64,000 bases of DNA. Origin: Thalia democratica. Lineage: Eukaryota. The position numbers and the translations under genes were made by a program. Within the stretch, counting starts at the first letter, position 1, and every line of letters begins with the position of its first letter. The notes below the pieces were generated by a model. The model was not told the DNA's origin, searched no databases, and was given only the letters and a program-made list of their open reading frames with translations. The stretch lies in assembly GCA_965202585.1 (NCBI GenBank), contig OZ241826.1, positions 114,948,001 through 115,012,000 on the forward strand. Reading direction: 5' to 3'. This document shows positions 24,491 through 50,339 of the stretch, piece after piece.

Positions 24491-27440
24491 TTAATACCAA
24501 GGTAACTTTGCAAAGGAAAAGCCTTTAAAATATTTTGTTACTTCACATTGTTCTTCAGACCATTTATCCTTGTCAACATCATAACAAATTAATTTTGTTT
24601 TGCAATTTTGAAGTATTACAATTTTATTTCCAATAGACGAAGCTTTCTTCAAATAAATATGACTATTAGGTGGCTTCAGGGCAATAAACTTATTACAAAC
24701 GTTGTCAAAAACTTCACAATTGCTAATTCCATGATCAATAACAAACAGTTTATCTTTTACATCAACTAAATTGTGACCATAATGATGTCTTATCATATTA
24801 GGCAGTGATGACTATTTATCACCAAACACATCATATGATTCTACTGAGTTCAAACTAATATTATTATTATCTATTCCACCAGAAACCACAATACTTTCTT
24901 GAAAGATTGTACAAGCTGCATACGATCTAGCTACATTCATTCCAGCAATTTCTTTAAAATTGTTATGTTTTGTATTGAATTCTAAACAGGACTTAGTTGT
25001 TACTATATTGTCATAATTATCTTCTATATGGAAACCACCGAATATTAATATTTTATCCATAAATGCACAAGAACAAATGCGATGACGTTCATAAACCATA
25101 CTAGATACTACAGTCCATGTGTTAGTAGTTGGTGAATATTTTTCAACCGAATTTACAAAATTATCAGCACTATCATAACCACCAAAAATATAAACTTCTC
25201 CTTTTAAACAAACAGCTTCTAAGTATTCTCTACATTGATTCATTGGAGCAAGATCTTTTACGCAGTTCATGTTACTTCTATCAATTTGTTTTACTTTACT
25301 TACAACTTCAACCAATCTATCATCATAACCACCACAAATTAACAAATTATATTTGTTTTGGTTACAATATCTACTTGTGTAAGTAATATTTGAATTATTT
25401 ATCAAGTAGTTGTTGTTTGCTAGTACTTCTTCTAATATGTTATCATTATCATAAATTTCAGTAGTTGAAGAAATTTTATCTTTAATATATTTCAAAGCAT
25501 GTTCTGACAATAAAGGAAGTCGGACTTTTAGTAACAATTGTTTTGCATGTTTGCGACGTTGTTCAATGTTGAACTTAAACCAATTATTTGCTGCATTAAA
25601 TACTTCAACTTCTGAGTGAATACCCAATTCAGAACTTGAAAGTATTTTTGCAACAAAACTGAAGTCTAAATGCAAAAAGTTTTGAGTTTCAACTACCATC
25701 GGAAAACATCGTTCTATATAATTTAAAGACCAGTCAGAAATAGTAGCTAGGTTGTAACATTTAGCTAAACAGTAAAATACGACAACATTTTTAAATTTTA
25801 ACTTGTCTTGAAAGATTTTGCTGATCTTTATGATTTTCTTTTCTTTTTGAAAAAGCTTATTTATTTTCAAAGCTAAAACGATTTCATATTCTTTCATATT
25901 TGGTGTATCTAAAAAATTAATTATGTATAAATATCATATTTGTAAATTTGCTTAGAATAACTGACAGATTTTTAGAACTAGAAATCTACGTAATTGATAA
26001 CAATATAATGTTTTATTACAAAATGCTGTTATTTTATATATAATAAAAAGTAAAAATTTTTGTAATTATTCTTAAAAAATAAAAAAAGTATATATTACAG
26101 TACTACTTTTTTAAATTTAACATTTTAAGATATGGTAGTCTACTAGCAGTTCTCTGATAGGAGATTTGGCTTAGCGCTGTTTATAGATGTTTAGTAAAAT
26201 TTTTAACTCTAAATTCAAAAACCGGCAAGCATATAAATCTGGCCCTTTAAAACAAAATTTGAAACTAAAATTTGATATAGTTTGGTTTAAATTATTTCAG
26301 ATAACAATGCACTTTAATTAAGTAAGGTATAAAACCACAATTTTTTTTAAAAACATAGAAATATCCTACTTGTCTTTTTAACACCTTTGTAGTATTTATT
26401 AAATACAAAGTTTATCAAATTAATTGTTTTAGTTATAAATCTTATTTTATAGAACTTAATTTTGTAACAGTTTCTTTATATCCACTATATTTTGAGATAT
26501 AATAAGACGAAGTCGAAGAATTTAATGCAATTCTTAGATAAATGCAAAACGAGACTTTTTTGTTAGAAGAATATCTTTTCCTACACTTTAAACATTACTT
26601 TTATAAATATTAAGTAAATAATAAACATTACTATTGTACCAAAAAATAAAGTTGTCTTTTTTAATTTGAAAAGACATTTTTCAAGATGTGCTTTTCTATT
26701 TTTGGGTCATAATTTTTCTAGATCATTACAATAAAATTTTTTTGATATGAAAATATCTCCTGAATACTTAAGTTTGAAAAACTATGGGTAAGATTTTTAT
26801 TTTGTATTTTTTGAATTTCTGATTAGTTTTACTGTAAAAATGTTACAGTAAATTTGATTAAATTGGTAACATTTAAATAAAATGACTATATCTTAGGCAT
26901 TGTATAATTTTTTATAATTGAATTAATTATCTTTAGTTCACCTTTATAATTAACATAAAAGTCAATATTAACATTGAAAAATATCACTAACCCCTAATAT
27001 GCTCTTGGTATCTATTCATTTAAATTTTCTTAAAATAGTTTACAGTTTTCAAATTTTTCAAAACTTTTTAATAAAATCTAATATTAATACTAAGTCTTTT
27101 CTTTTAAATTTTTAATCCTTTCTAAGCATAAAAGTTATGCTTTAACTAAAAAATTAAGTCTATACATAATTTAAATTAATAGATATTAATTAAAACTAAA
27201 TATAACAAATAAATCAAACTAAAATATTTTTTAAATTTTATTACCTGTACTTTCAAAAGTGTAGTAAGCTCGTACACTTTTATCATCTAATTGTTTTGTA
27301 AAATACTTCATGCATTTGTTTTTAAAACAATCAACTACTGATTTTCTACAAGTTGCACTAACACTTGCTAATTTTTTATGGTTGTTATCAATTATTATTC
27401 TTTTGACACCAATTTGATCCATATTAGTTTCATCTGACAT
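24491..27440 (-). pseudogene. Gene C: two-exon BACK-Kelch gene with one premature stop (exon 1 27440-27245, intron 27244-25909, exon 2 25908-24491)
   Basis: Donor ACAG|GTAAT, acceptor TTTTAG|AT, phase 1. ORFs 24812-25897 and 24491-24796 are in the same frame, separated only by TAG at 24814-24812 where the paralogues have TGG (FGDKW). Would be 537 aa if intact; 430 aa as truncated. Confidence 0.85.
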
Positions 27441-30400
27441 GACTTAATAATGGTTTTTAATCTTATTATAAAGAAACCTGAATATACTAGTTTGAATATA
27501 TTTAGCTATTTCAATAGTAATTTACTTATTTTACAGTTTTAAAATAAAAAAAATCTAGTTATCTCAAAATAATATTTATTTAATATAAATTTAACTGAAT
27601 TATTGCTTTTTTTATTTAAAAAAAAAATAATGTATAAATTCAGAGTTTTTTAGCACTTGAAAAATTATTATGTAAGAACACTTTAAAAATTTTATTTATT
27701 ATAAAATCACATTAATTAAAAATATTTTGTTAGTAAACATGAATAAAACTGTGAATTTCTAGTGTGTAATTTTTTTAATAGTTTTAAAGTCTTAAATTAA
27801 ACAATAGAAATAAGAAAATATTCAACCACACTACAAAATTGATAATATTTATTTAATTGAGCTTATACTTTTGTTTTGTAATTCACAGATACCTAACACT
27901 ACAAGTAATAGACATCATTAAAAAAACTACAATATTGTTTTAATAAAGACGACTAATATGTTTAAAGGTGTTAAGGCAGGGAGTGATATAAGATTAAAAA
28001 TAAAGAATTAAAACTTATATTTATAGAATAGTACTACAGTAATAAAGATAAACTTATCAAAACAAAACAAAAATAAAATTAAGAAAAAACACTTAAAATA
28101 ATTAAAACTATATAAAATAAAGTTAGCCAACCTGTGTTTTGATAAAAAGAACAAATGAGCCTAAATCAAACTAAGTAGAGTATGTAAAAACTATTTGAAT
28201 ATTTTTTACATTAAACTTACCACTTAAATTTCACAAGAAGTAAAAAGAATCAAATAGTTTAAGTTTGTTTTTTAAACTTTATAAAGAATATTTTACATAG
28301 TTATAATAACCCTATACTTTTGTCTAAAATACTGGCCTGAGATTAAAACTAGATTGAGTTCATTTTACAAAACCTAAATAGTTCCGAGTCATGCAGAGAT
28401 TTTCTTTATTTATCTATGTTTGGTATTTTTTTTTTAGTTGTCCTGAGTGTTTGAATACTCTTTGCAAACTATTATGAATTTTTATTATAAAAAAAAATAT
28501 TTTGGGTCAGCCCGAAATATATACAAAAATCCTTAGTTATTTTGAGTGTGTGACATCCCTTATATTTTAATTTTATAAATATAAATTTAAGTTTTATAAT
28601 TTCCGGATACATAACGACATCTTTTATAGTAATAACTTTTAAAAATATTTCGTTGTTTTTACTAAGAAAACATTTAAAGCTTAATAAGTGCAAATAAAGT
28701 TAGTTTTCTTAAGTTTATCATTTCAATCTAGATTGAAATAAAATCTGATTGTATATTCATGACAAAGACTGTAACTAACATAATTTTACTTTCTATTTTT
28801 ATACTAGAGTGACAACTTATTTTTACAATAATTTTCCAGATTTTTTGAAACATAATATATTTTTATTTCTTTAAAAAAAAAATTTAAACATAAATAAAAA
28901 ATTTTTAAAATTTACTTAACTACTAAAATGATACTCTAAATGTGTGTGAGTTTAAGTTTTACTTAATATAATTTTAATTAAGAGTATTTTTTATTATTAT
29001 TAATATAATGGCCTCTTTATTGCTAAGAATAGTTAAAGTTATAGAAATAAAACATGTAAGTTTTACGGATTTTACATAATTTTGATAACCAAAGTTTTAT
29101 CTTTTTATTTATTTCCAAAATTACTAAATTTCTCATCTTTTTAAGTTGAAATTTATATACCATAGTTTTTTAGTTAAATTGCCATCTTAAATTTCTAATT
29201 CTAAAGTTAGTTATAACTTTTGCTTTGACTTTTTTTACCAATAACTAAGTACAATGGATAGATTTTATTTAAATTTTAGATATTAAAATTAAAACATATT
29301 GATTCACAGGTCAGAATCACATGATTAAATTGTTTAAGTAATTTTTTTGCCTGCTTAGTATTTTGAACTTAATAATTTTCCCTTTCTGTCTTTAAATGTT
29401 AAAATTTTATTTTATGAGTATTAGCAAAACATCATGTCACCGAGAGATTTTTTTACATAAAAAAACATATAATTTATTTTTGATTACTTTAATGTTAATT
29501 AGCAAGGTAGAGTTAATCATAAATAAATCTACTTAAAAATTTATAAGGGTGGCCACTGCTTTTTTTAAATACTCGTTTTTTCGTTTAGTTTAAAATTAAA
29601 AACTGTGTGAAGTAGTGTTCAACTAAATTAAGATACTGTAAAGCTACTTTTAATTTAGTTTTCAATAAAAGAAATAGAAATTGATATTGACAAAAAATTT
29701 TATTTTATATCTAATTTTTTAGTGTCAAATCAAAGTTTTAGTACTTAATATAAGGGTTGCCACTCTTTAAGTCAAAAAAAATTTTCCCTAAATAACAAAA
29801 AACTTCCCTGAGTTTAAATCCTTAAATTTCTTATAATATTATAAAAAATAGAATTTATTTTTTAAGAATATTAAAGAACTAGCTGCAAGACCAAAAAAAC
29901 TTTTAAATAAGCACTCAAAAAAATTAAATCTAAATTTTTTGAACATAATATTAAAGCTGAATTAACTAAATTTCTTTCTAGATCTAGAAAAAAATTTCCT
30001 GATATTTAAAAAAAAATTTTTAAATTTCCCTGAAATTTTTATAAAAATCCAAAACTGCTCTGAGTTTCCCTTTGTGAAAAAAAGAGAATCGAAATTCCCT
30101 GAGTTTCCCTGAATTCCTTAAGTGTTTGGCAACCCTGTAATATGTAAAAATAGTCTAAAACTCCAGGTTTTTAAAATCCATATTATTCATACATTATTTG
30201 AAAAATAACTCAAATTACAGGTTTTTTAGCCAAATCCAGGTTTTGTTGTTTTGTGGAAACTCTGACTCTTGTATACTTAAGAATAAGACTGATGTTTTAC
30301 AAACATTATGAATTGAAAGTACATTTGAAAATATTTATATTACTTTATAATCAAAATATACTAAAATCTTTGATCTTCAGCAACTTAACATAATTATATA

Positions 30401-31830
30401 AATATTTTTTTCTATAAAAAAAAAAGTTTTATAGTTAACCCTTTGTGACAGTGTTCTTTTACTGAGCAAAACTAGCTTAAAACAGCAAAGTGATTAAGTT
30501 TGTTATAACTAAATGAATAAAAGGTCTTTTTTGTTGTAAATACTTTTTATTATAAACAGGAATTCTACTGTTTTAGTCAAATATACTGTCCTGAATGCAA
30601 TTTATTTGATTGAGTTATCCTGAAATTTTTGAAATCCTGATAAAATGTTAAATATTTTTAAATTTCACTAAAGACTTTTCTTTAAAAAATTGGGTAGTGA
30701 ATAATAAATATTTTAATTAATTTAACTAAATCTAAATCAAAATTTAAATTGCTGTTTTAAGCAAAAAAACTGTCTAAGTGATCATTTATTTGCTTGAGTC
30801 ATCCTATATTTTTGAACTCAAAGAAAAAATAAAAAACTTTTAAAATACACCAAAAATCAACTTCTTCAATAAAATTGGGTATAAAAAAAAGATGTTTCAA
30901 TTAATACAACCAAATATCATTCAAAGTCTAAAAAAAGGCCTAGGATTTTCAAACGCTCAAAACGATTCTCAGTTTTTCAATAAAGAACATAACTATCTTG
31001 AGCCTGCCTGACTTTAAAAATCAAATTTCAATTATCCTGAGTAATACTGAGTCATCCTGATGTTTTAAAAATAGTTTGAGTAGTACTGAGTATCCTTAGT
31101 TAGTGGCAACCCTGTATAAATATTTTTTGACATTATACTAAAATTGATAATTTGTGTCACTATGTGATTATATACTAATTTTGTTTTTATAAAATTGGGT
31201 TGACTGATGTTAATAGGGTCCTTAAAAAAGCTTTGAAAAATCTCTGAAGTGAACAATATTGCAGGATTCAAACCCAGTGGTTTGCAAATATACAATAAAA
31301 AACCTGGTTTTTATCCTGTTACAGTGGTTTCTCCAACAATTTTTGAAAAAAATATTATAAAGGGTTTTAATTTTATAACAAAATAATTTTAAATATCATT
31401 TTATCTGGTTAAAAATGACATGCTCTGTTAATTTGTAGTATTTTTTTTTATTTATGATTACACAAATTCATATTGATATAAAACTTGAAAGTTTAAAAAA
31501 CAAATATAAAAAAGTTATATTGTTAAAATAACTATCTTTGTTTAAAATTCTAACTATATAAGCTTTTGAAAAGTACAGAACTATATTAACTAATACAAGA
31601 AAATGGCAAACTTGCAGTAACAACTTTGTACTCATTAATATTATTTAAAATAACTAATACACTTTTTTTTAATCTAATAAACAATATGTAAATTTTACTT
31701 TGTTTAATACTTTTTGATTTTCCAATACTACTATGGTATGAGATGTGGCTATTGAACTAAAGTGGCTTTTTTTAAGCAATGAGTGTTGAAAGCAATAAAT
31801 TCAAGTCAATTAACAACATTTTATTTAATT
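25930..31830. repeat. Left arm of a large inverted repeat (gene C intron, exon 1 and upstream)
   Basis: Reverse complement of ~37195-42780. Examples: 30781-30900 vs 38041-38160 essentially identical; the 73-aa ORFs at 28472-28693 and 40251-40472 mirror each other. Confidence 0.92.
29752..30137. mobile_element. 386-bp MITE with (C/A)AGGGTTGCCA TIRs and a 6-bp TSD (TAATAT), nested in an older MITE
   Basis: TIRs AAGGGTTGCCA / TGGCAACCCTG flanked by TAATAT on both sides. The paralogous empty site is at ~5301-5320 (AGTACTTAACATGTAAAA). Confidence 0.85.
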
Positions 31831-32320: not shown

Positions 32321-32940
32321 TTCCACGTTTTAATAAAACTCTTTTGAAACATTACTTTTCTGTATTCAATCGAAAAAGCTGAATTTAAATATAAAAAGGT
32401 GGGTTGTGGTTTAAGAGCGATCAATTTTTTTGTAAAACTGACGAAAAATTCAAAACCGTTTGTTTTAACACCAGTATCAAATAATTTATCTATCACAACA
32501 ATTAAATTGTGGTTACTATAACATTTTATCATATCAGGGATTTTTAAAAATTTATTAGTAAATTTATCTGTACAATTCTACCATTTTTAGTTGGTCTTTA
32601 TTATTATTTCCACCACTTTAACCAACAAAATTTCTTTGAAAAACTACACAAGCTCAATTAATTGTTGCTACATTCATTCAATCTTTTTATTTAAAGTTGT
32701 TAGATTTTATTTTGAACTCTAAACAGGAATTAGTTGTTGAATTGACATCATTATGATAAAAACCTTCAAAAACAAATATTTTATACCTAAACGTACAATC
32801 GCAAAAATTTAAACGATTATTAATCTGCTATAATATTCCAAATGTTAGTAGAATATGAATATTTTTTAACAGTTTTTGTCAACTTTTTAAATAACTTTAT
32901 GAAACATTTTAAACGTAAGTATTAAATATTATATTTCTAA
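32321..32940 (-). pseudogene. Highly decayed kelch-repeat fossil (approximately blades 2-5)
   Basis: Minus-strand translation across stops and frameshifts gives TVKKYSYSTNIW, RLNFCDCTF.YKIFVFEG, TTNSCLEF, ACVVFQ.N and MIKCYSNHNLIVV.DKLF. These are collinear with SVEKYS.STNKW, FCACAFMDK, TTNSCL.F, ACAVFQGN and HNLV.VKDKLF in the intact genes. Confidence 0.75.
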
Positions 32941-33989
32941 ACTCACCTTGGACTGGTATTTATTTGATGAAATATTTTTCAATCGAAAAGAGAATCATTA
33001 TGTTTTATTATAGTCCTGTACATGACGCTAAATTGTTCTGGGGCAGGCATGGTAAAATTTAAAAACCACTAATTACAGCTGTTTTTATCGCTATAGTAAC
33101 TAGAAAGCTAAAGTAACAAAATATAGCTAATTTTTTTCTCTTATACTTTACATTGGATAAAATTTCATAAGATAATTTTTATTACTTTTGTTAATATAAA
33201 CTTGCTATAGTGTTAAATTACTTAAGTTTCAATTTACAATGTACTAAAACAATTTTAACACCTTGATTGTAAAAGTAAAACAGTTTATAATAAAATTTTT
33301 ACATACAACCTTATTTTTATTTTTTTCAAAAACAAAAAACAAAGTTCTTTTTAAATTATTTTTAACTGAAAGTTAAAAAATAAACAGAATAAAAAAACTT
33401 TTAAGCATAAAATAATTTTAATTTGTAACTTAATCTTTCGTTCAATATTATTATTAATTAACCTTTTTTGTGTATAATTTTTTTATAAAGTTAAATACAT
33501 AAGTTCTTCAATGTACATTAGACTTAAATGTTTTAATATCTTTATTAATCAATAAAAGTTAGAAACAACATTTTTTGAGAAATACTAAATGTTAAATTTA
33601 CAGTATATAGAAATAAGTTTTGTTATGTGAATGCTTTGTCCACAGATGAGAGTTGTAAATTATAGGCTAAATTGTTCTAAAGAAATAACTATATAGTTTT
33701 AATTTGAGGCTACAAAATAAATCAAAGGTTAAAATAATGAAACTAGAAAGGTTTTAGTAAAAATTAATTTTGATATCATCAGTATGAGAAAACCTATCAT
33801 AAGAATATAAACTAACTATATTTTTAAGTTTGTTTATATTTGAGATTAAAAAATCCTACTGTCGGGGTTTTTGATAGTGATATATTTAATTTGCGACGCT
33901 TGTTACCATGTCTGTTCTGGAGTATGACTCGATAACCAAAAGATTTTTTCGTGCACTAGGTCCTTGGACCAAACTTTTTGAGCGTATTT

Positions 33990-34105
33990 TGTCGTTTAAT
34001 AAACAATATAAAATATTTCTGGTAGTTTCTCATAGTTTTGATAAAGATAAATGGACAAAGTATCATTTGAAGATAAATAGAAATTTTGTGATTTTTCTTG
34101 TGTAA
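33990..34105 (+). pseudogene. Possible fossil of a kelch C-terminus
   Basis: VVSHSFDKDKWTKYHLKINRNF weakly resembles ICYDVDKDKWSEEQCEVTKYF. The match is short and could be chance. Confidence 0.3.
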
Positions 34106-34319
34106 AGAGATTTCCAAGTGTTATACATTTTTTTTATTTGATTTGGTGTTGTTATTTTCGGTTGAAAAAATATTTTAATTTTTTAGTAGAAAAATAATTT
34201 ACTTACTATTAATATTTTTATTCTATATATAAATAATGAACACTTAAAAAACATCAACATTATAAAAAGTAATATATTTCATGTTATTTCATATTCATTG
34301 CTTTGAATAAGTGAAAAAA

Positions 34320-36300
34320 ATAACAAGCCATTTTAGTTTAATAACCACAGCTAATAAAATAATAGCAGTGGAATAACACAAATGCAAATCAAAATGTATT
34401 TTAAGAATTTTTAGGTATGTATTTGCACCAGAAAACTTTAAAATAAATCATTATACAAAATTAGTTAGGTTTCTGCATATATGATTTTAATAAGTTCCAA
34501 GAAACACTTTTTTGTAAAACATCAAATAAACAGATAGTTTTTAAAACAAGGTTTAGAGAATTAAGACTTTGCTCTCATTAATCTGTTTTTTTCTGTTAAA
34601 AAAAAAGTTTGAGTTATCTTAAATTACATGAACAAATATGATGATTTTACAAAAAATTTTCCTGCATTTAAAACTATTTCGAAAAGTTTTGTAACTATTT
34701 AATAATTCTTAAAAATAAAAATTTATCTAAAAATTATATATTCAAAATTATAAAATTTTTTATTTATATTAGTTTTGGAAAATTAGAAGTAATAAAAATC
34801 TTAAATTTATATAATCAGCAAACAAGGTGCATAAAAACTAGTAAAAAAAATTATTTTTCTCAAATAAGAAATATTATATTCAATTTTTTTTTTAATGAAT
34901 TACTTTTTAAAGTTTACTATTTTTTTAACTTGAAAAGGTAGCAATTTTTTGTCACCAAAACTTTTCACTTGCTTGTAATTAATATATTTGACTTGCACAT
35001 CTCTATTTTAATAAGCATTTTACATTTTTCAAATTAAGCAATCTTTTTTGGTTAAAACACATAACTATAAACCTTTAAAAGAAAAAAACCTTTTTACTCT
35101 TTATTCCTATCAATTATAGCAGAAACTACTGTAGTATATAATAATATAATTAACTTATTTTGTATATAAGTCAACCACTGCGTTTTAATCCTGGAATATT
35201 GTTTAATAATAATAACTTCAAGATTTTTTAAAGCCCGATTTAGGACCCCTTCAAGATCAGGCTACATTAGTTTGATTAAAATTAAAAGGTAAAAAATAGT
35301 ATAAAAATTGTTAGTGGCACAAATTTACCATTAACAGGGTTGCCATTTAATTGGAAAAACCTAAAACTTGGAATATTTTTGAAAACACAACCTACAAAAA
35401 CCTGGAATTTTTAACGAAAAAAAAAAAGAAATCCGGGAATTTTTAACTCTTTCAACATGTTTAGCAGTAAAGTTTCGAGTTGACACTAAATACTTTTTGT
35501 GTAGATTTAATTTATTGTCATCATTAAGATACTTTATTAAAAAACACATTTAAAGTAGCTTTACAGTGCCTTTTTAATGTTTTTAGAGTATTTTACACAG
35601 CTTCTTACCTTCAACTCAACTTTGAACTTAAAATAGATTTAAAAAAAGGACCTCTAGAAATTTTGGAAATCTGGAAAAAATTGCCAAAAATATTGGCAAC
35701 CCTGCATTAAGCATTAATGTAAAAAATATTTTTATAGAATTGCCACACACTCGATTATTTAGGATACTCAGGATAATTTAAATTATTTTTGAAAATCATA
35801 AGATGACTTAAAATAGTTTTGGCAATAAAAAATACTGCCATCGGGAATATGTTAGCAATTAAATTAAATATTTTAAAGATAATTTAGCAAATTTTCACTA
35901 TAACATAGTATAATGTTTATTTTTATGTTAAGAAAACATCAGCTTCACTATTGATCTAAAAGGGTACTAGATTTGTAAACCCTTGAAGAAACATATAAAA
36001 TACAGTGGCCACCCTATGATTTTTTTCAGGAGGTTAAAATTTAATCAAGTTCACTATTTCTTCATCTTTATAAGTTAATATTATTGTGATAAAAAAAAAC
36101 CTTTTGTTTATCTAATTAAAACATTTTTTTTGGGTTTGTTTTGTTTGGCAAATACTCATAGGATAAAATCTCATTATTAAAAACACAAAGAAAAATTCTA
36201 AGCATGCAACAAAACTACATTCAACAATCCAACTTGGTGATCACAAGTTATACAAAATTTATTTTAATAAGATACAAACAATACTTCTTCCAAAATCTAA
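34320..36300. repeat. Orphan, truncated B-like upstream module in the spacer of the inverted repeat
   Basis: Anchors at 34325, 35170, 35740, 36005 and 36145 are collinear with the upstream module and share B-specific variants. No exon 1 follows. Confidence 0.65.
35335..35704. mobile_element. 370-bp MITE with CAGGGTTGCCA TIRs and a perfect 6-bp TSD CATTAA (internal sequence differs from the 386-bp family)
   Basis: CATTAA|CAGGGTTGCCA...TGGCAACCCTG|CATTAA. The paralogous empty site is at ~11765-11780 (ATTACCATTAAGTG). Confidence 0.88.
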
Positions 36301-36536
36301 TCCGAAACTAACCCACAATGTTTTTATTAGTGTTAGAAAACAAAGTTATTAAAAGAAAAACCAAAAGGCCAAGAAAACCAAAATAATCTAAATTCGGAAA
36401 ATTAAGCAAAATAATTTGTTCTGAAATTTAATATATAACAAAGTTGTATTACAAGGAAAACTTGAATTTATAATAAATTAACTTAGTATATATTTTGATT
36501 TTTAGAAAACAAATAAAGAGACTTCAATTACTAGAG

Positions 36537-36600
36537 CAGTGGTTCCCAACCTTTTTGATGCCCCGCACCCCTAAAATCTCTTAATTTGATCTTGCACCCC
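36537..36600 (+). mobile_element. 5' end of a hAT (Charlie-like) element, truncated
   Basis: CAGTGGTTCCCAACCTTTTT is a typical hAT-Charlie terminus, preceded by TACTAGAG (resembling the NTCTAGAN target). No matching 3' end was found. Confidence 0.55.
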
Positions 36601-37194
36601 TAACACTATATACTTAATACTCTAGTAACTAGAGGATAAATAAATAAACGAATTGACTAATTTATTAAATTCTTATAAGATATATTAAACTAGACTCAGT
36701 TTCGGAGTTTATTTAAATTATTGTATTCGCAAAATTAAAACATATAATAAACTTAAAACTCATTTTTAAGGTTTAAAAAGGCAATGCTACAATTTTATAT
36801 AATTTTTATTGGTATCTAAATCCAGATATCTTGAAAAATTGCCTGGAAATTTATAATTGTTAACAAGACAAATGTTTAATAACTCACTAAAGCCTGTTAC
36901 GTATAAATCAAAATTAGTATAATTTTAAATTTTTTTAAATGCTAAAATATCTCAGTATGATGAACATAAATCAGAATATTTTTACTTTATTAAGATAACT
37001 TTTTTTTAACTAAGGATATATCTAATGTTATGAAAATTTTTTAAAACATATTTTTTTAGATTTAGAATAAGATTTAGTTTTTACGGTTCAGAAAGTTTTT
37101 GTTTTAAAGGTTGCCAAAAATATTGAACCCTGGGTGAACTTGAAATTTTACAGTTTAAACCTGGAATAGCCGGGTTGGTGTTAAGTAGGAAGAG

Positions 37195-40100
37195 TAAAAT
37201 GTTGTTAATTGACTTGAGTTTGTTGTTTTAACAACTCACTGCTTAAAATAAGCCATTTTAGTTCAATAGCCACAGCTCATACCATAGTAGTACTAGAAAA
37301 TAAAAAGTATTAATCAAAGTAGAAATTATATGTTGTTTAATAAAACAAAAAAAGTGTATTAGTTATTTTTAATAATATTAATGAATACAAAGTTGTTACT
37401 GCAAGTTTGCCATTTTCTTGTATTTGTATTGGTTTTGAAAATTTTCAAGTTTTTCATCGATATGAATTTATGTAATCATAAATGTGAAAAAAATTGCTAC
37501 AAATGAATAGAGCATGTCATTTTTAACCAGATAAAATGATATTTAAAATTATTTTTGTTTTAAAAATAAAACCCTTTATAATATTTTATTAGAAATTGTA
37601 GGAGAAACCACTGTAACAGGATAAAAACCAGATTTTTTATTGTATATTTGCAAGCCATTTGGTTTGAATCTTGCAATATTGTTCACTTCAGAGATTTTTC
37701 AAAGTTTTTTTAAGGACCCTATTAACATCAGTCAACACAAATTTTATAAAAACAAAATAAGTATATAATTACATAGTGACACAAATTATCAATTTTAGTA
37801 TAATGTCAAAAAATATTTATACAGGGTTACCACACTCATGATACTCCGGACTACTCAAACGATTTTTAAAACATCAGGATGACTCAGTATTACTCAGGAA
37901 GGATAATTGAAATTTGATTTTTAAAGTCAGGCAGGCTCAAGATAGTTATGTTCTTTATTGAAAAACTGAGAATCGTTTTGAGCGTTTGAAAATCCTAGGC
38001 CTTTTTTTAGACTTTGAATGATATTTGGTTGTATTAATTGAAACATCTTTTTTTTATACCCAATTTTATTGAAGAAGTTGATTTTTGGTGTATTTTAAAA
38101 GTTTTTTATTTTTTCTTTGAGTTCAAAAATATAGGATGACTCAAGCAAATAAATGATCACTTAGACAGTTTTTTTGCTTAAAACAGCAATTTAAATTTTG
38201 ATTTAGATTTAGTTAAATTAATTAAAATATTTATTATTCACTACCCAATTTTTTAAAGAAAAGTTTTTAGTAAAATTTAAAAATATTTAACATTTTATCA
38301 GGATTTCAAAAATTTCAGGATAACTCAATCAAATAAATTGCATTCAGGACAGTATATTTGACTAAAACAGTAGAATTCCTGTTTATAATAAAAAGTATTT
38401 ACAACAAAAAAGACCTTTTATTCATTTAGTTATAACAAACTTATTCACTTTGCTGTTTTAAGCTAGTTTTGCTCAGTAAAAGAACACTGTCACAAAGGGT
38501 TAACTATAAAACTTTTTTTTTATAGAAAAAAATATTTATATAATTATGTTAAGTTGCTGAAGATCAAAGATTTTAGTATATTTTGATTATAAAGTAATAT
38601 AAATATTTTCAAATGTACTTTCAATTCATAATGTTTGTAAAACATCAGTCTTATTCTTAAGTATACAAGAGTCAGAGTTTCCACAAAACAACAAAACCTG
38701 GATTTGGCTAAAAAACCTGTAATTTGAGTTATTTTTCAAATAAAGTATGAATAATATGGATTTTAAAAACCTGGAATTTTAGACTATTTTTACATATTAC
38801 AGGGTTGCCAAATCCTTAAGGAATTCAGGGAAACTCAGGGAAACTCAGGGAATTTCGATTCTCTTTTTTTCACAAAGGGAAACTCAGAGCAGTTTTGGAT
38901 TTTTATAAAAATTTCAGGGAAATTTAAAAATTTTTTTTTAAATATCAGGAAATTTTTTTCTAGATCTAGAAAGAAATTTAGTTAATTCAGCTTAAATATT
39001 ATGTTCAAAAAATTTAGATTTAATTTTTTTGAGTGCTTATTTAAAAGTTTTTTTGGTCTTGCAGCTAGTTGTTAAATATTCTTAGAAGATAAATTGTATT
39101 TTTTAATAAATTATAAGAATTTTAAGGGTTTAAACTCAGGGAAGTTTTTTGTTATTTAGGGAAAATTTTTTTTGACTTAAAGAGTGGCAACCCTTGTATT
39201 AAGTACTAAAACTTTAATTTGACACAAAAAAATTAGATATAAAATAAAATTTTTTGTCAATATCAATATCTATTTCTTTTATTGAAAACTAAATTAAAAG
39301 TAGCTTTACAGTATTTTAATTTAGTTGAACACTACTTCACACAGTTTTTAATTTTAAACTAAACGAAAAAACGAGTATTTGAAAAAAGCAGTGGCCACCC
39401 TTATAAATTTTTAAGTAGATTTATTTATGATTAACTCTACCTTGCTAATTAACATTAAAGTAGTCAAAAATAAATTATATGTTTTTTTATGTAAAAAAAT
39501 CTCTCGGTGACATGTTGTTTTGCTAATACTCATAAAATAAAATTTCAACATTTAAAGACAGAAAGGGAAAATTATTAAGTTCAAAATACTAAGCAAGCAA
39601 AAAAATTACTTCAACAATTTAATCATGTGATTCTGACCAGTGAACCAATATGTTTTAATTTTAATATCTAAAATTTAAATAAAATCTATCCATTGTACTT
39701 AGTTATTGGTAAAAAAAGTCAAAGCAAAAGTTATAACTAACTTTAGAATTAGAAATTTAAGGTGGCTATTTAAATAAAAAACTATGGTATATAAATTTCA
39801 ACCTAAAAAGATGAGAAATCTAGTAGTTTTAGAAATAATTAAAAAGATAAAACTTTGGTTATCAAATTTATGTAAAATCCGTAAAACTTACATGTTTTAT
39901 TTCTATAACTTTAACTATTCTTAGCAATAAAGAGGCCATTATATTAATAATAATAAAAAAAACTCTTAATTAAAATTATATTAAGTAAAACTTAAACTCA
40001 CACACATTTAGAGTATCATTTTAGTAGTTATGTAAATTTTAAAAATTTTTTATTTATGTTTAATTTTTTTTTAAGAAATAAAAATATATTATGTTTCAAA

Positions 40101-42780
40101 AAATCTGGAAAATTATTGTAAAAATAAGTTGTCACTCTAGTATAAAAATAGAAAGTAAAATTATGTTAGTTACAGTCTTTGTCATGAATATACAATCAGA
40201 TTTTATTTCAATCTAGATTGAAATGATAAACTTAAGAAAACTAATTTTATTTGCACTTATTAAGCTTTAAATGTTTTCTTAGTAAAAACAACGAAATATT
40301 TTTAAAAGTTATTAGAATAAAAGATGTCGTTATGTATCCGGAAATTATAAAACTTAAATTTATATTTATAAAATTAAAATATAAGGGATGTCACACACTC
40401 AAAATAAGTAAGAATTTTTGTATATATTTCGGGCTGACTCAAGACGTTTTATTTTATAATAAAAATTCATAATAGTTTGCAAAGAGTATTCAAACACTCA
40501 GGATAACTAAATAAATAAATACCAAAGATAGATAAATAAAGAAAATCTCCGCATGACTCGGAACTATTTAGGTTTTCTAAAATGAACTCAATCTAGTTTT
40601 AATCTCAGGCCAGTATTTTAGACATAAGTTTAGAGTTATTATAACTATGTAAAATATTCTTTGAAAAGTTTAATAAATAAAACTAAAACTATTTGATTTT
40701 TTTTTACTTCTTGTGAAATTTTTAGTGGTAATTTAATGTAACAAATATTCAAATAGTTTTTACATACTCTACTTAGTTTAATTCAGGCTCATTTGTTCTT
40801 TTTATCAAAACACAGGTTGGCTAACTTTATTATATAAAGTTTTAATTATTTCAAGTGTTTTTTCTTAATTTTATTTTTGTTTTGTTATAATATTTTTATC
40901 TTTACTACTGTACTACTAATCTATAAATATAAGTTTTAATTCTTAATTTTTAATTATATATCACTCCTTGCCTTAACACCATTAAACATATTAGTCGTTT
41001 TTATTTAGACAATATTGTAGTATTTATGATGATGTCTATTATTTGTAGTGTTAGGTATCTGTGAATTACAAAACAAAAGTATAAACTCAATTAAATGAAT
41101 ATTATCAATTTTATAGTGTGGTTGAATATTTTGTTATTTCTATTGTTTAATCTAGTACTTTCGAACCATTAAAAAAATTACACATTACAAGTTCACAGAT
41201 TTATTCATGTTTACTAACAAAGTATTTTTAATTAATGTGGTTTTATAAAAAAAAAAAATTTAAAGTGTTCTTACATCCTAATTTTTCAAGTGCTAAAAAA
41301 CTCTGAATTTATACTTTAGTTTTTTTTTTGAAATAAAAAAAAGCAACAATTCGGTTAAATTTTTAAATTTATAAATATTATTTTGAGATAATTAGATTTT
41401 TTTAATTTAAAACTGTGATTTTTTTAATTAAAAACTAGTTAGTCATCGAAGTTTTTTCATAATAAACTATAAAATTAAATATTCTTCTTAATCAATAAGT
41501 AAATATATATTCGAATAGCTAAACATATTCAAACTAATATTTTCAGATTTTTTATAACAAGATTAAACAAACTATCATCAAGTTATGTCAGGTGAAAGTA
41601 ATATGGACCAAATTGGTGTCAAAAGAATAAAAATTGAAGATAACCATGAAAAATTAGCAAGTTTTGGTGCAACTTGTAGAAGTTCAGTAGTTGATTGTTT
41701 TAAAAACAAATGCATGAAGTTTTTAACAAAACAATTAGATGATAAAAGTGTACGAGCTTATAACACTTTTGATAGTAGAGGTAAGAAAATTAAAAAAAAA
41801 TATTTTAGATTGATCTATTTGTTATATTTAGTTTTAATAATATTTATTTATTTATTTTGTATAGACTTAATTTGTTCGTTAAAGCATAACTTTTATGCTT
41901 AAAAAGGATTAAAAATTTAAAAGAAAAGGATTAAAATATTAATTTAAGATGTTATTAAAAAGTTTTTAAAAAATTTGAAAACTGTAAATTATATTAACAA
42001 AATTAAAATGAATAGATAAAATTTTCATATTAGGGGTTAGTTATATTTTTCGATGTTAATATTGACTTTTATGTAAATTATAAAGGTAAACTACAAACAA
42101 TTAATTCAATTATTGAAAAAATATATAATGCTTGAGATATAGTTATTTTATTTAAATGTTACCAATCTATCTATTTTACTGGAATATTTTTACAGTAAAA
42201 CTAATCAGAAATCCAAAAAATCAAAAAATTAAATCTTACCCAACATTTTTGAAACTTAATTATTCAGGTGATATTTTGTTATTAAAAAATTTATTGTAAA
42301 GATTGAGAAAAAATTTGACCCAAAAAAAGAAAAGCACATCTGGAAAAATGTCTTTTCAAATTAAAAAAGATAACTTTATTTTTTGGTACAATAGTAATGT
42401 TAATTATTTACTTAAGATTTAAAAAAAAAGACTGTTTAAAGTGTAGGAAAAGATATTCTTTTATCTTGTCGGTTTTTTCTTTTACAGTTTAAAATATTTC
42501 TAAACATCTATAAACAGCACCAAGCCAAATCTCCTATCAGAGATATGCTAGTAGACTACCATATCTTAAAATGTTAAATTTAAAAAAGTAATACTACAAT
42601 ATTTTTTTATTTTTAAACAATAATTACAAAAATTTTTATTGAATTTAATTTTTTTTTTTAGTATATTTAAAATAACAGCATTAAGTAATAAAACAATAAT
42701 GTTGTTATCAATTACGTAGATTTCAAGTTCTAAATCTATCAATTACTCTAAGCAAATTTACAAATATGTTATTTATACAT
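37195..42780. repeat. Right arm of the large inverted repeat (gene D upstream, exon 1 and intron)
   Basis: Reverse complement of ~25930-31830, with a ~5.4-kb spacer between the arms. Confidence 0.92.
38800..39195. mobile_element. Copy of the same MITE insertion in the gene D arm
   Basis: CAGGGTTGCCA...TGGCAACCCTT, flanked by ATATTA/GTATTA. One extra internal 10-bp unit (AACTCAGGGA). Confidence 0.85.
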
Positions 42781-44230
42781 GCTTAATTTTTTAGATTTAT
42801 CAAACGTGAAAAAAGATGAAATAATTTTAGCTATGAAAATAAATAAGCTTCTGCAAAAGGAAGATGCAAACATGAAGATAAGTAAAATTATCCGAGATAA
42901 ATTAGCTGTCAAAAACGTTCTTACTTTTTACAGCTTAGCTAAACTTTACAAACTACCTATTGTTTCTGAGTCATCTTTGCTCTACATTGAACGTTGTTTT
43001 ACAATGATTGTTGAAACTCAAACATTTTTACACTTAAACTTTAATCTTGTTGCGAAAATACTTAACAGTTCTGAACTAAATATTCACTCGGAAGTTGAAG
43101 TATTTAATGCAGTAATTACTTGGTTAAAACACAACAGTGAAGAACGTATCAAATATGCAAAACAATTGTTACTAAAAATTCGACTTTCTTTATTATCAGA
43201 AGATGCATTGAAATATGTTTTAGATAAAACTTCGTCATTTTTTAGCAATAATGAAATTATGAGCGTACTGAATGAAGTTATGACTAAAAAAGAAACAAGT
43301 TTACAAAACAAAATAAATAGTTATGCTACAAATAGGTGTTGTAGTCAAAATCAGTTTAGTTTATTATCATGTGGTGGGTACGATAGTATAACAAGAAAAA
43401 CAGTCAAGGATGTACACCAAGTTAATGGAAGTAATCTAAGCAACGTTTTACGACTACCTTCAATGGTTATTGAGAGAAAAGGTTTTGAAGCTATTTGTTT
43501 AAAAGGAGAAGTTTACGTTTTCGGTGGTATTGATAATGCTAATATTTTGGTAAAATCAGTTGAAAAATTTTCACCTTCTAATAATAAATGGACTGTAGTA
43601 ACTAATATGGTTGATAAACGTCAGTACTTTTGTGCTTGTGCATTTATGGGTAAAGTATATATTTTTGGAGGTTCTTTTAGTGAAGAAGAGAAAACAACTA
43701 ACTCTTGCTTACAATTTAATACAAAAGAAGAACATTTTTCTGACATAAGTTGGAAAGAAATAGCTAGAATGAAAGAAACAAGAAAGTATGCAGATTGTGC
43801 AGTTTTCCAAGGAAATATTGTGGTTTCAGGTGGATGGGATAACTTTGCCAATTACTTAAATTCAGTAGAATCATATGATGTTTTTGCTGATAAATGGTCA
43901 CCAATGCCTATTATGGTAAATTATAAGTTTTTTCACAGTTTAGTTACTCTAAAGAATAAACTATATGTTATTGGTTATGGAACGAATAGTTGTGAAGTTT
44001 TTGACAATATCAATAGAAAATTTGTTGAACTAAAATCAAGTTACAATCATTACGCTATGAATAAAGCTATGTCAATTGGAAATAAAATAGTAATACTTGA
44101 AAATCACAATTCATCAGTTATTTGTTATGATGTTGATAAAGATCAATGGTCTAAAGAATCGTGTGAAGTAACAAAAGGTTTTAAAGATTTTGCTTGTGCA
44201 AAGTCATTTGGTATTAATAGAATCGGTTAA
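41585..44230 (+). CDS. Gene D: BACK-Kelch (KLHL-like) protein, ~543 aa spliced (exon 1 41585-41780, intron 41781-42794, exon 2 42795-44230)
   Basis: Donor AGAG|GTAAGA and acceptor TTTAG|AT join in frame (196+1436 nt). BACK region (LNFNLVAKILNSSELNIHSEVEVFNAVITWL) followed by six kelch-like blades (CGG, FGG, FGG, SGG, IGY, IGNKIV, with W motifs). Confidence 0.9.
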
Positions 44231-46069
44231 AAAATAATGTATATTGTGGAATTGCTTTTATTAAACTTAAACTAAACTTGAACTTAATATTTTTTATCGG
44301 TTACCTAATAAATACATTTTAATTAAAATTTTGTGTTATCATATTATACAAAAAGTAGAAATTTTAACTTTTTTATATAGTTTTTAGATATTTTTAAACT
44401 TATTATTTAATATATATAAATTATTGTAAGTGTATGACAATAGGTTATAAAATAGCTACAATCTAAAAATACTTTTATTATAATGATTGCATGGAAAATT
44501 TTCTGAAAGTTTAAGGTAGCCATCTTAAAAAAACATAGTAGAAGATAGATTTTTAGTAATATATTTTTTTTTGCTGTATTAGTTTGCACCTCTCATAAGT
44601 AATATTTTATTGCCACAGACTTTGATCTGCTATATATCAAAAACTGTTTCGATTTTTTCAAATCTGTATAAATACTTTTTTAGCTTAGTTAAAATTGTAG
44701 TTACAATATTGTTAGTTTAAACATCTTATAGCTTAGCAACAACATAAGATCTAATTGATAAAAAAAAAAGTGAACTATACGATATTAAATTGCTAAATGA
44801 TAAAAAAAGCTTAGGCAGCAACCCTGTAGTACTTATTCACATAATAACTAAAAAAAAAGGATTTAAAGTTACTTTTAGTCAAAAAGGGTAGTGCAAAAAT
44901 TTTCGACAAAATAACACTTAAGTAAGTTTTAAAATCTTTTAAAGTTTATACTAAGATTAACTTATATTTAGATTAAAATAAATCAATTAAAGGTACAGGG
45001 GGTCAACCTTCATTTTGAAGAAAATAGCATTGGATGTAATAAAAAAGCTTTAAATACAAACTACAAGCTAGTTTTTGTAATAGTATTTAAAGTATTCTTT
45101 TAGTTTTTTAGTTATTATAAACTTAGCTGCAACAGCCATATAGAACTATTTTAAAAACCCAAAATTTTAAAACTCATATTTTCCTTGTATTTAAAGCTAA
45201 TTAGCATTATTTTATTTATAAAAATTTTACTGTGTCAACTTTTTATAATAATGTTGATCAAAAAGGGGTTTTGTAAGTTTTTACTCTGAAGCATCTAGTA
45301 ATATTTTTTTTTGTTTTTACTTTAAATACGCTTATGTTTCCGTGTGTATTATTGTTTTTTCTTATTGTTTTTAATTTTAATATACGCCTAATTCAATATG
45401 TTTTGAAAAATTTATTGATTTTATATGTACCATATCTTATAAATAATAAATTATTTTCGATAGAAATAGAAATAACTAATGAACAGATACAAACATCAGT
45501 GTTTTAAATATTTAATAAATTAAAAAATAATAATTAGTTTATTACTTAAATTGTTTAGAATAATATCATGCAAAACAATTTAATATCTTAAAGGGACCCT
45601 GCATCAAAAGTTAACCCCTAATTTGATCAAAACTATTGTTAAAGGTAGGTAACGGAACACTTTTTAAAAAAAAAAAATCTGTTTAGCTTTTATGACAAGG
45701 AAAATAATAAGTTTTATTTTGATCATTTTAAAATTTTATAAAAATGGAGATTGAAGTGAAGTTAGTTAATGTTTGGTTAATTAAATTTTTGTATACCTAT
45801 TTATAGCTGCTTGAATCAACAAAATCAATATTTTACAGACCTTGAATTCGGCTGTACTATCTTTTTAAAAGCTAGAGATTCTTGCAAACTCGTAATTAGT
45901 AGCATTTGTAACCTTTCACAATAAGAATGTCAACTACAACATGGTGATCTTACAATTCTTGAGAGTTTTTCAAAGAATTAGCATATAAAATTGTAGTTGT
46001 TTTAATAGTTTCTAATTAAGTATTTCAATTTTTTTAAAGATAAGGGGATATAAATGGTGTTATTGTTAG

Positions 46070-47305
46070 CAAAATGACCGGTATATTTAAATATTTTAGT
46101 ATAAAATGGCTGTCACATGATTTATAAAATTTGGTGGACTATCTGTTTGAAATAATCAGGTGAACATAGTACTGTTAAAGATTCAAAAAACTATCATTTA
46201 CCTTTCTGTATAATACATCTTTTTTACTATTACTTATGTTCAGATAAGGTTTCTGAATGAAAACTTAATAGATCTTTCGTTAGAAACTTTCCATTCCTCT
46301 TCAATTTTTTAACAAAAATAAAATTTTTATGCAAATTAAGCAAATCACGTTAAGGTGAGTATTTCCACTTTAAACTATTTTCATCTTGAACTCTCTGAGG
46401 TGGTCCATCTTGTCCAAACATGATAAATATTTGTTAAAGTTGTAACATTTCTGAAAGAGATGGAGAAAAGGGGGTAGCAGAACAAAAAGTTTTAAAGTTT
46501 AAACAAATAAAAAAAAATTGAAAAGAGGAATAAATATGTGCAAAAACTTCTTAAACTGTGTAAAAGCTGGCCAGGCCTGCAGTGAGCGTGGAAGAGCTGC
46601 GTATTATTTCAAAATTCTATTCTGATACATATGAAGTTATTTGTACTGAGTTAATTAAATATAGAGAACCATACAAATCTAAAGTGTTATACAATCCAGA
46701 ACTTTTCAAAGTAAACGGTAATACCAACGAGGAAAGACTTATAAATTTTTAAAGTGAAGTTTGCTTCTAAAAATGATGAGTGCTCTCATTTGCTGTGTTC
46801 ATTACTAACAAACTCGTATCTATCATTAGTTGTAGGGGCTCCTCCCCAAACATAAAAAATTAAAAAATGAAAATATTTTAATAGGTCATTATTATGCACA
46901 TTGTATACACAGACATGTGGTATATCGTTACTTGTGAAAGTAAAAATAACGATTTGACTTCGAAAAAGAAACCATCTCATGAGAGTTCAAAATGGAAATA
47001 ATTTCAAGTGGAAACACCAACCTAAACGTGAGTTCTTGAACTTGCATAAAAATCTTATTCTTGATTGTGAAAATAAATAGGAAAGGAATGTTTCTAATGA
47101 AAGATCTATTACTTTTTCATCGAAAAACCATATCCAAAAATATTTTTTAGTAGAACAGATGTCTTATACAGAAAGGTAAATAATAGTTTTTATAATCTAA
47201 AAGAGTATTAGGTTTACCTAATTATTTCAAACAGATGGTTCATCAGCTTTTATCAATCAATGACTGTTATTTTATACTAAATTTTTCAAAGTATCAGTCA
47301 ATTTG
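46070..47305. mobile_element. Degenerate element with ~240-bp inverted arms and a GC-richer interior
   Basis: Mirror pairs: 46073-46116/47262-47305, 46136-46157/47220-47241, 46197-46213/47167-47182, 46270-46300/47080-47110. Confidence 0.55.
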
Positions 47306-47529
47306 CAATAATGTGTAGTGTTAGTACAATAGGATATAGTACAATTTTCGTTTTGTTTTGCAATATTCTTTATCTGTTTCTAAAAGTCTTTATTTTGCAA
47401 TCATTATCTTAATGTTTAACGCCATACAACATTATATAGCCTATAATAAGTCACAACTTTTTAATACTTCGTTTTTTTGTTGTAATGCTAATTGAATATT
47501 TATTTAAGAGTTTTTTAAACACTTAAAAA

Positions 47530-47920
47530 TAAATGAACTATGACTTCAAATATCCCGCTAATGTAATTATTACATCAATTTAATTTGTTAAGGTAAGTAA
47601 GTATACCTAAAATGTTTTGTTATACAATAAAATTCTTTTATTGAGATCATTAACAAGCTATGCTTTATAATTTTCAATAAAGCACCATTTTATAGAAAAT
47701 AAATTGCACATTTAGGGTGATTATGATGTCATATTAAATCAAAAGCAGTTAATATGTCATTATATCTATATCAACATGTAAAAGCTTTCATTTTAGAAAG
47801 ATATTATAAGTCTAGGACATGTATAAGTGATTTTATTACTGTTTAAGTCACCAAATTGATAAGTATATGAATTTTCGGGTCGAAATAAGTTTTTAGGGCG
47901 GCATACTTTTTTTTATGCAA
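47530..47920. repeat. Distal 3' flank of gene D, paralogous to the 3' flank of gene E (~63355-63560)
   Basis: Shared ACTATGACTTCAAA, AAGCTTTCATTT..TTATAAGTCTAG.ACATGTATAAGT and TTACTGTTTAAGTCA. Also 44420-44462 vs 62255-62297. Confidence 0.75.
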
Positions 47921-50339
47921 ATTTGTTATTTCAGATTTTTTTAAAGAAGCAAAAACAATATGACAAAAAAAATACTGTGCTCCCTACTTCTATATAAGCA
48001 AATATAAATTTCAATGATATTAATAAAATTAACTTATATCAGAAAGTGAATTTATTTACTTTTCTATTACCTTAAAATTACTTTTGTTTATGGTGTTTTT
48101 TTATAAACAACAAAAGTGTTTAAATATTAAACTATTTTTACAATTATACATAATAAACAAATTAAATAACTTTTAATAAACAAAAATATTGTCAGTCATG
48201 TTAATTTAAAATTATATAGAATTATTACAAAACACAATTTTTTTTTTAAGTATTGTAAACATTATTATCAATCAAATACTACGTTTTACTATAAAATTAT
48301 TTTTTCAAAAATAATTTCGACAATGTTTTTTATATTTAGATATTAATCATTATATATTTGAATATTATAGTATACATATTCGCTATTATAATATTTAAAA
48401 AACGAATTAAATTTTGAATTACTGTAATTAAATTAATATTTTAAGTTGTAAATTGTTTGTTTATGTACTATAACTTAAACTTCAAACAAAATACTAATGT
48501 TAAGACTTTTTTTAACTAAAATTTTACCAAGTATTTAAGAATTTTTTTTTGCCTTTTATTGTTTTAATATGAGGTCGGATGTTTTTATTTTAATTTGCAG
48601 TTATGTTTTAAAAAACAATTATTTCGAAAACTTTTAAGACTTCTAAATAACTATATATAAAAAATTAATAAAGAAATAACATATAAAAGATATTTTTATT
48701 TACTTAGTTAAATGAATTTAGACCTGATTAAAGTTAGAGCGAACTAACTTAGAAAATATTAAGCAAAAAGCTTTATACTGATTTTAATAATGCTACATTT
48801 GTAAATAAAAACCTATTGTAAATTTTTAGAAAAAATTTTGTTATTTAAAATTTTGAAATTTAAATTTTTATATTAAATTTAGCGTCTTATGTAATAATAA
48901 TCATTTGTTTGATACATAATACTTTAACTATTATTTACTAAATAAAGGAATTTATACGTTTTTAGTTTATAAACAACATTTATTTTCTGTTTTAATCACA
49001 ACGATAAAAAAAAAATTTATAAATAGAATCAATATTAAACAAAGTTTTAAGCTGTTTCAATAAAATAACTAACTACAATTTCTCTACTTTTATTTAATTA
49101 GTAAAAATGTTACTAAATAAGCTACTTTTTATTAGACTTAAAGAATATACAAATTGAATGTTTAAAGTAAGGTCATCAAAGTTTTTTATTCAAAATAATA
49201 AAGTTCAGCCATTTGTAGTGTATAAGTAAGTCTATTAAGTTTTTATAACTTGTATTAATAATTTTAATATAATTTCCATGGCAATGTTTCTTCTAATATA
49301 TTAGATTTTATAAGTATGCTTTAATGTAATTATGCAATATAACTATGTTTATTGTTCTAGTTAAATTTGAAAATACAAGTTAGTATATGATATTAAAATT
49401 AATAACTAAGTAATTCATAAAGTATGTTTTGTATCAAACAAACGTATGAACTTAAATTCACAAAAAAAATAATACAATTTTATCTACTAAGATAAATATT
49501 TACTATTTAATTTTATTTAAAGCCTATTTGCAATCTGATTTATTTAAAAAATTAACAAATTAACTTTAATATTTTGTAACATCCTAAAGCTATAATTAAA
49601 TATGTTTTCTGGATACTATGTTTTTATTAAATTGTTTGCTGTGCAATGTTAAACTAAGGCATCATAACCTGAGCTACTTAAACAATACACACAATAAAAA
49701 TAATTAAATAATAACATTTATATAACAATTGACTGTAAAAAGCCGTATAGTTCCCATTAATAATTTCATAAATCATAAATAAATCAAATACCCATCTTTA
49801 ATACACTGGACACCTCAATCAAAGTTTAACCAATCAATAAATATATGATGAATGAGAAATGTTACAACGACTGCATATCAACCGAGTAAAACTCACAGAC
49901 TCAGTTTTGTTAACATCTTATCTTAAAGAGGGTGACCGAAAATTGTGTATTTTTATTATAAACAACAAAATAATGTCGAGTCAGACTGAGTCTTAAAATC
50001 AAAATATTATGAGTTATTTAAAGTGTGTGACTGCCCTCTCCTGAACTTTGTATATTTTGTTTTCAACTTAAGGATCTATAAATACAATTTTTATTCTAAT
50101 AAATTATTTTAATTGGTACATTTTACTTACTAATTAAAAAATTAGAAGCCTAAAAACATTAATAGTTTTATATTAATTAACATTGATAAAAAAACACATT
50201 TGTCAAAAATAATAATGAAAATTTTTCATTCAACATTTTTTTCTTAAGCACCGTTTTATATAATTCGATTCAAACATATAGAGCGCTTCAAAATTTAATT
50301 TGAATTCCAGGGGTTTCCAAGATTCTAGGTTTTGTGGTT

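Follow-up and report, generated by a model that had tools for sequence, protein, structure and literature searches.

The 64,000-nucleotide stretch of Thalia democratica DNA analysed here (G000:C1:114948001-115012000; hereafter the window) belongs to a genome of 802 Mb, has a local G+C content of about 23% and contains no N. It harbors five members, A to E, of a BACK-Kelch gene family, and the present study is concerned with one of them, gene D, whose successive segments have different closest relatives. More than 40 full-length copies of the family were scored among 973 first-look candidates; most map at 114.5-116.3 Mb on the same chromosome, in a cluster of paralogs that spans 1.7 Mb. The genes share a two-exon plan. 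Exon 1 encodes 63-65 residues without a Pfam match, and exon 2 encodes a BACK domain followed by six Kelch repeats (Pfam: BACK, 7.9e-23; Kelch_1, 1.1e-35; KLHDC2/KLHL20 propeller model, 4.6e-20). Pfam found no BTB domain in exon 2, nor any in exon 1 or in the head of exon 2 at E <= 10. The A/B, C/D and T/F pairs are arranged head-to-head; in each, one partner belongs to the A/C/T exon-2 clade and the other has a B-type exon-2 head. Gene D itself is a real, intact two-exon BACK-Kelch gene of 543 codons (Table 1). Its intron is in phase 1 on both sides, the reading frame and the canonical splice sites are intact, and exon 1 encodes 65 residues with no match in Pfam.

We compared D with about 30 paralogous loci of the same genome. 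The nearest relative was scanned in 200-nt windows and mismatches were counted per 50 nt; segment trees were obtained by maximum likelihood, topologies were compared by approximately unbiased (AU) tests, and breakpoints were located by MaxChi with permutation. The loci that recur below are F (L005, at 115.16 Mb), the G locus (L008, with G at 115.22 Mb), A (L003), K (L013) and H (L010). Along D, the nearest relative changes from C to F/G, then to the B type and finally to L001/L002, and the segment trees place D in a different clade for each segment, with full support each time. An earlier note on this DNA had suggested sliding-window identity and per-segment trees as checks on its view that D is chimeric; both were run, and they returned discordant segments, not concordant ones. 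The block structure of D, the discordance of its trees and its breakpoints are thus matters of direct observation.

Table 1. Segments of gene D and features of the surrounding window
Feature	Position	Strand	Remarks
Gene D	41585-44230	plus	
D exon 1	41585-41780	plus	196 nt, phase 1, donor G/GTAAG, C type, read directly from the sequence
D intron	41781-42794	plus	1014 nt, GT-AG, F/G lineage
D exon 2	42795-44230	plus	stop codon 44228-44230
Exon 2 head: linker and first two thirds of BACK	42795-43106	plus	B type; BACK profile positions 2-64
B/H-type patch, D only	42797-42860	plus	diagnostic sites
Breakpoint, B-type head to L001/L002-type body	43106-43114	plus	MaxChi
Rest of BACK, six Kelch repeats, stop codon, ~500 nt of 3' flank	43114-44727	plus	L001/L002 lineage
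Proximal upstream of C-type 5' module	40400-41584	plus	D 88-94% identical to C, A, T, F, L023, L024 alike
D-side arm of C/D inverted repeat	37500-40399	plus	homogenised with C; partner on C side ~28545-31433
Spacer block between C and D arms	33912-37422	.	94-95% identical to L008 (G locus) and L021 spacers
Gene A	exon 2 just left of window	minus	
Gene B	exon 1 14409-14598; exon 2 from 14848	plus	intron 249 nt
Gene C	exon 2 ~24455-25893	minus	
Gene E	in window	plus	

The 5' end of D is made of a module that we call C type. This module (window 40196-42860) has homologs with sharp common ends in A, C, E, F, G, T, L023 and L024. It comprises about 1.4 kb of upstream DNA, exon 1, the intron and the first 65 nt of exon 2, and many genes share it at 88-90% identity, in a star-like tree; in their Kelch bodies these genes are only 65-75% alike. 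Over 40400-41900, D has no special partner in the 200-nt scan, and the tree of 40900-41480 is unresolved. From 41900 to 42794 the nearest relatives are F and G (92-98% in 200-nt windows), which lie 170-230 kb away. The intron is about 94-95% identical to theirs over its full length versus 87-88% to those of C, A and others, and it carries the F/G-like letter at 57 of 58 diagnostic sites. At the protein level, exon 1 is 90% identical to that of G, 81% to those of F and C, and 49% to that of B. The exon 1-intron tree reads (F,(D,G)) with 100/100 support, and the corresponding stretch measures about 1300 nt in D, F and G versus about 1650 nt in A, C and T, a shortfall of some 335-350 nt. The proposal that the upstream DNA, exon 1 and intron of D are all duplicates of those of C therefore holds for positions 37500-40400 only; exon 1 and the intron are 9-11% away from C and closer to F/G.

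F and G carry C-type exon 1 and intron sequences but a B-type exon 2. The switch lies about 65 nt inside exon 2, with C-type letters kept to 42859; farther on, the exon 2 of F is 99% identical to B at 43134-43650 and then 98-99% identical to I and J. Since both genes already have a C-type 5' end on a B-type exon 2, the chimera predates D. The description of D as a fusion of a C-type 5' end with a B-type start of exon 2 was thus right as to its chimeric nature, while the junction would be inherited and shared with F and G. The F/T pair has proximal arms (exon 1, intron and about 1.4 kb upstream) that agree at 90% and distal arms that agree at 75-81%, a pattern that fits an old copying of the partner's 5' module onto a B-type gene.

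The head of exon 2 is B type. Over 42797-43106 this type includes B, H, I, J and L004, joined from about 42863 by F and G, and the head tree places D inside {B, F, H, I, J} with 99/99 support. The near-identity of D 42807-43125 to B 14860-15178, already remarked upon in the earlier note, amounts to 17 differences in 319 positions, with 3 in the first 140; C and E indeed carry a different version, 74-76% identical to D. Between 42795 and 42862 there are 13 sites at which F and G keep C-type letters. D is of B type at 7 of these, of F/G type at 4 and of neither type at 2, and its letters across this interval are those of H, a truncated B-type copy. Given the nested position of D, next to G in the F/G/D clade, D would most simply have received a short extra patch from an H-like B-type copy. 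A recent conversion from B, one of two scenarios put forward previously, would survive in this form only: it is confined to 42797-42860, and the nearest sampled relative is H rather than B.

The largest switch lies farther downstream. Whether F, B or J serves as the left parent, MaxChi sets the breakpoint between 43106 and 43111-43114 (chi2 = 279-302; permutation p <= 0.0005). With F in this role, F-like letters occupy 74 of the 80 informative sites to the left of the breakpoint, and L001-like letters 299 of the 313 to its right (chi2 = 284). A 55-mer across the 43106-43114 junction has a single occurrence in the genome. The breakpoint interval corresponds to position 64 of the 103 positions of the BACK profile and falls inside the longest conserved block of exon 2 (42997-43196), where subfamilies are 81-88% identical. 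Beyond it, the body (43114-44727) is 93% and 91% identical to a pair of genes, L001 and L002, that lie about 300 kb away; the match stands at 99% as far as 43520 and at about 93% thereafter. The body tree unites D, L001 and L002 at 100/100, far from the B-type clade, which is itself supported at 100/100. AU tests reject the D+L001+L002 grouping on the head (p = 3.7e-7) and, on the body, a grouping of D with the B-type genes (p = 2.8e-55). The earlier note stopped at the B-type start of exon 2; this exchange with a third lineage, at about 43110-44727 the largest of all, lay outside its single-window view.

For the pair D and L001, synonymous divergence (dS) amounts to 0.84 over the head, 0.013 over 43101-43520 and 0.09 over 43521-44230. 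As dS shows the same jump, the latter is not an artefact of selection. The L001/L002-type tract seems to be nested or to combine two ages. For 43640-43960 the genome offers no better donor, and this part of D is either older or faster-evolving. Similarity to L002 ends at 44727, and the D flank from 44728 to 46068 is unique in the genome, so the bounded tract is compatible with a duplication boundary too and conversion is not separated from crossover. L001 and L002 (C1:114650000-114701499) form a tandem duplication with a spacing of about 31.5 kb and copies 95-98% identical; no recognisable exon 1 was found within 8 kb upstream of either. Between close paralogs (D-L001, F-G, F-I), the ratio of nonsynonymous to synonymous divergence (dN/dS) is 0.7-1.1 in the propeller versus 0.2-0.5 in the head, which points to relaxed or diversifying selection on the Kelch region.

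On its upstream side, D is linked to its neighbor C. The two genes stand head-to-head with an inverted repeat between them, as had been noted. Over 37500-40400, C is the nearest relative of D, 94-100% identical. Substitutions between the two amount to 5.6% at 37500-37899, 0.4% at 37900-38699 and 2.5% at 38700-40399; nearer the genes they rise to 7.8% at 40400-40899, 9.5% at 40900-41480, 9.2% in exon 1 and 11% in the intron. The values from 40400 through the intron equal the background between any C-type genes; therefore only the distal upstream arm is a specific C/D duplicate. Fisher tests gave p = 4e-5 and p = 2e-10 for the nested divergence, and p = 4e-5 and p = 5e-22 where the arm was set against exon 1 and the intron (9-11%). 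Each of the three arm-segment trees unites D and C at 100% support, and the arms within this locus diverge by 0.4-5.6% versus 19-25% for the distal arms of F/T. When the arm was examined against F, MaxChi put a breakpoint between 40842 and 40852 (p <= 0.001; a truncated C alignment was used). The nested series of 0.4%, 2.5%, 5.6% and about 10% suggests repeated exchange rather than a single duplication. In the tree of 37500-38150, D+C (100/99) clusters with the D-side arms of the loci G and L021, to the exclusion of the G partner-side arm (94/93). Tentatively, the C side may in this segment have been copied from the D side, opposite to the direction from C to D proposed earlier.

D is not alone in being composite. 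A four-gamete test of the pairwise homoplasy index (PHI) type was significant for 20 exon-2 sequences (p <= 0.001), and F, A and K are independent mosaics. The exon 2 of F is B-like up to the equivalent of about 43557 and I/J-like thereafter, that of A is T-like to 43519 and then K-like, and that of K combines a C/B-group head with an L018-group body. K maps to another chromosome, and its head/body switch, between 43109 and 43116, is at the same place as the breakpoint in D.

We propose that D is a mosaic drawn from at least four sources through homology-dependent exchanges among paralogs of the cluster, a reading to which we assign a probability of roughly 80%. The exchanges would be events of ectopic gene conversion or unequal recombination between paralogs; their order, direction and molecular mechanism we infer as follows. 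Before D, F and G diverged, the B-type member of a head-to-head pair would have gained a C-type 5' module, made up of about 1.4 kb of upstream DNA, exon 1, the intron and roughly the first 65 nt of exon 2. The pair would then have been copied around the cluster by segmental duplication. In the D lineage, a short B/H-type patch would have replaced 42797-42860, a tract of about 1.6 kb from the L001/L002 lineage would have replaced 43110-44727, and the distal upstream arm (37500-40400) would have been repeatedly homogenised with the inverted arm of neighboring C. The junctions occur where paralogs are most alike, in the splice-acceptor region and in the conserved BACK core, as expected for homology-guided repair.

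Several points weigh against this account, or against parts of it. The sample covers about 30 of more than 40 full-length paralogs, and closer donors for some of the blocks may exist. The public read data, Logan contigs from four runs, are 120-300 nt long with no listed contig spanning a junction, and the run search returned no RNA run; the contigs of the JGI metagenomes did not contain the junction 55-mer. Conversion and double crossover are indistinguishable here, and the three events specific to D may have come in another order. A different start can be envisioned, in which a C-type 5' module first came to stand on an L001-type exon 2 and the whole head was later acquired from an H-like copy. 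Finally, the direction of the exchange between C and D rests on one tree of 650 nt with 94/93 support.

One could argue that the assembler or the polisher merged reads of different paralogs and that D does not exist as written. The setting lends itself to such errors: the cluster is highly repetitive, word depths run in the thousands, public contigs break every 120-300 nt, and the 800 nt at 37900-38699 are almost identical to C, a pattern that polishing could create. Yet each block of D differs by 1-6% from its best relative, which means that no block is a verbatim copy of another locus, and the mosaic retains a 543-codon frame and canonical splice sites. The window is free of N, and the junction 55-mer is found once in the genome. 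Moreover, F, A and K are mosaic as well, and a one-off misjoin does not account for this pattern. We regard an assembly chimera as very unlikely.

The other scenario of the earlier note, taken literally, has D itself copying the promoter, exon 1 and intron of C by inverted duplication after an A/B pair gave rise to C/D. The head-to-head position of C and D, the inverted repeat that covers upstream DNA, exon 1 and intron, the distribution of A and C in one exon-2 clade and of B and the D head in another, and the recurrence of the pair arrangement at F/T all speak in its favor. However, D exon 1 and intron are 9-11% from C in substitutions and only about 5-6% from F and G by path length on the exon 1-intron tree, and D shares with the latter two the shorter exon 1-intron stretch that sets them apart from A, C and T. 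Above all, F and G already bear the C-type/B-type chimera, so the capture is older than D and the present C was not its source. The literal version is thus highly improbable, although the underlying idea of a captured C-type 5' end fits the data once it is assigned to an ancestor that D shared with F and G; the D intron is sister to those of G and F and not to that of C. As for the view that no exchange occurred and that the identity shifts merely mirror rate differences among head, BACK core and propeller loops, we give it almost no credence: conservation in exon 2 does vary strongly (59% to 88% between subfamilies) and propeller dN/dS is high (0.6-1.1), but rate variation cannot alter the identity of the nearest relative, L001 goes from 70% identity with D in the head to 97% just after while B goes from 95% to 68%, synonymous divergence jumps likewise, and AU tests reject a single tree.

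Ectopic gene conversion and unequal recombination are known from tandem families such as the immune-receptor, NLR, olfactory-receptor and antigen-variation clusters. The mosaic proposed here shares with them adjacent segments with different closest paralogs, tracts of tens of bases to a few kilobases, junctions in conserved stretches, a possible role of pseudogene copies as donors, and a signal that extends to the whole family. It differs in that the family of D is not annotated in public protein sets and in that exchange is read here from one assembly. Arm-to-arm conversion is likewise known in inverted repeats and palindromes. As in these, the C/D arms flanking a 5.9-kb spacer are far more alike than paralogous arms and their divergence is graded; unlike in these, homogenisation affects the distal upstream DNA only, stops about 1.2 kb before the genes, and leaves the genes different. 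In domain layout, with BACK followed by six Kelch repeats, the products resemble the cullin-3 adaptors KLHL and KBTBD, whose clusters are also the look-alikes by features. Whereas those proteins have a BTB-BACK-Kelch architecture, the N-terminus in the D family is a 65-residue exon in which BTB was not detected.

D is therefore a well-resolved but ordinary example of a process known in multigene families. Its value lies in a base-resolution view of how a very large, unannotated BACK-Kelch family diversifies: 5' modules, BACK heads and Kelch propellers would be recombined between paralogs hundreds of kilobases apart, and the inverted upstream arms of neighbors would be kept alike. Because genes of the cluster are mosaic, whole-gene trees mislead, and segments need to be analysed separately for trees, duplication dating and selection tests.

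The location of the 43110 junction invites a further thought. H is truncated by a high-copy dispersed element at L010:1593-1601 (genome C1:115968593-115968601), the equivalent of window 43108-43117; this insertion point is within about 10 nt of the breakpoints in D and K. The element, putatively of the hAT class, starts with CAGGGGCG, a sequence that resembles hAT-type ends; it is at least 1.6 kb long and is present in hundreds to thousands of copies at 89-97% identity. It is conceivable, if doubtful, that the junction marks a preferred break site linked to this transposon rather than a chance crossover point. Were the element of the cut-and-paste kind, an H-like ancestor that lost it would be left with a double-strand break at precisely this point, and repair of the gap from an ectopic paralog would yield the structure of D. 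More generally, the cluster would work by cassette shuffling, with 5' modules, BACK heads and propellers as the recombined parts.

Of the neighboring features, gene B conforms to its previous description, with a very different exon 1 (49-51% amino-acid identity to that of D) and an intron of exactly 249 nt (GT at 14599, AG at 14846-47). In its exon 2 (14848-16276) the frame is broken about 171 codons in, leaving open reading frames at 14859-15365 and 15523-16116; B is for this reason probably a pseudogene, despite its 99% identity to F over the equivalent of 43134-43650. The segment at 34320-36300 had been taken for a B-like upstream module without a gene. This assignment was tried and rejected: the B upstream region matched over only about 340 nt, at 67-76%, and C-type upstreams match equally. 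The segment is 94% identical to the spacers of two other loci, and its core (35060-35340) groups with the G-locus and L021 spacers in a separate clade (100/100), distinct from that of the B-type upstreams. The segment is an ancient remnant of the repeated upstream module that came along with the spacer.

A search for literature specific to the family found nothing, and a protein search outside this genome returned only unnamed proteins from ENA metagenomes, at <=61% identity. Elsewhere in the C-D spacer lie a degraded Kelch exon 2 fragment on the minus strand (window 32342-32885), 65-69% identical to many paralogs, and a dispersed repeat insertion of about 870 bp (33044-33916), copies of which occur on most chromosomes at 84-90% identity. 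On the 3' side of D, a dispersed element at 46069-47957 has inverted ends of about 335 nt (46069-46404 and 46971-47306) and many copies at 75-83% identity. Between A and B, and again beyond B, tandem arrays with units of 165-171 nt occupy 8090-8588, 9819-10482 and 19907-20424; the array at 8.1-8.6 kb repeats that at 9.7-10.4 kb in inverted orientation.

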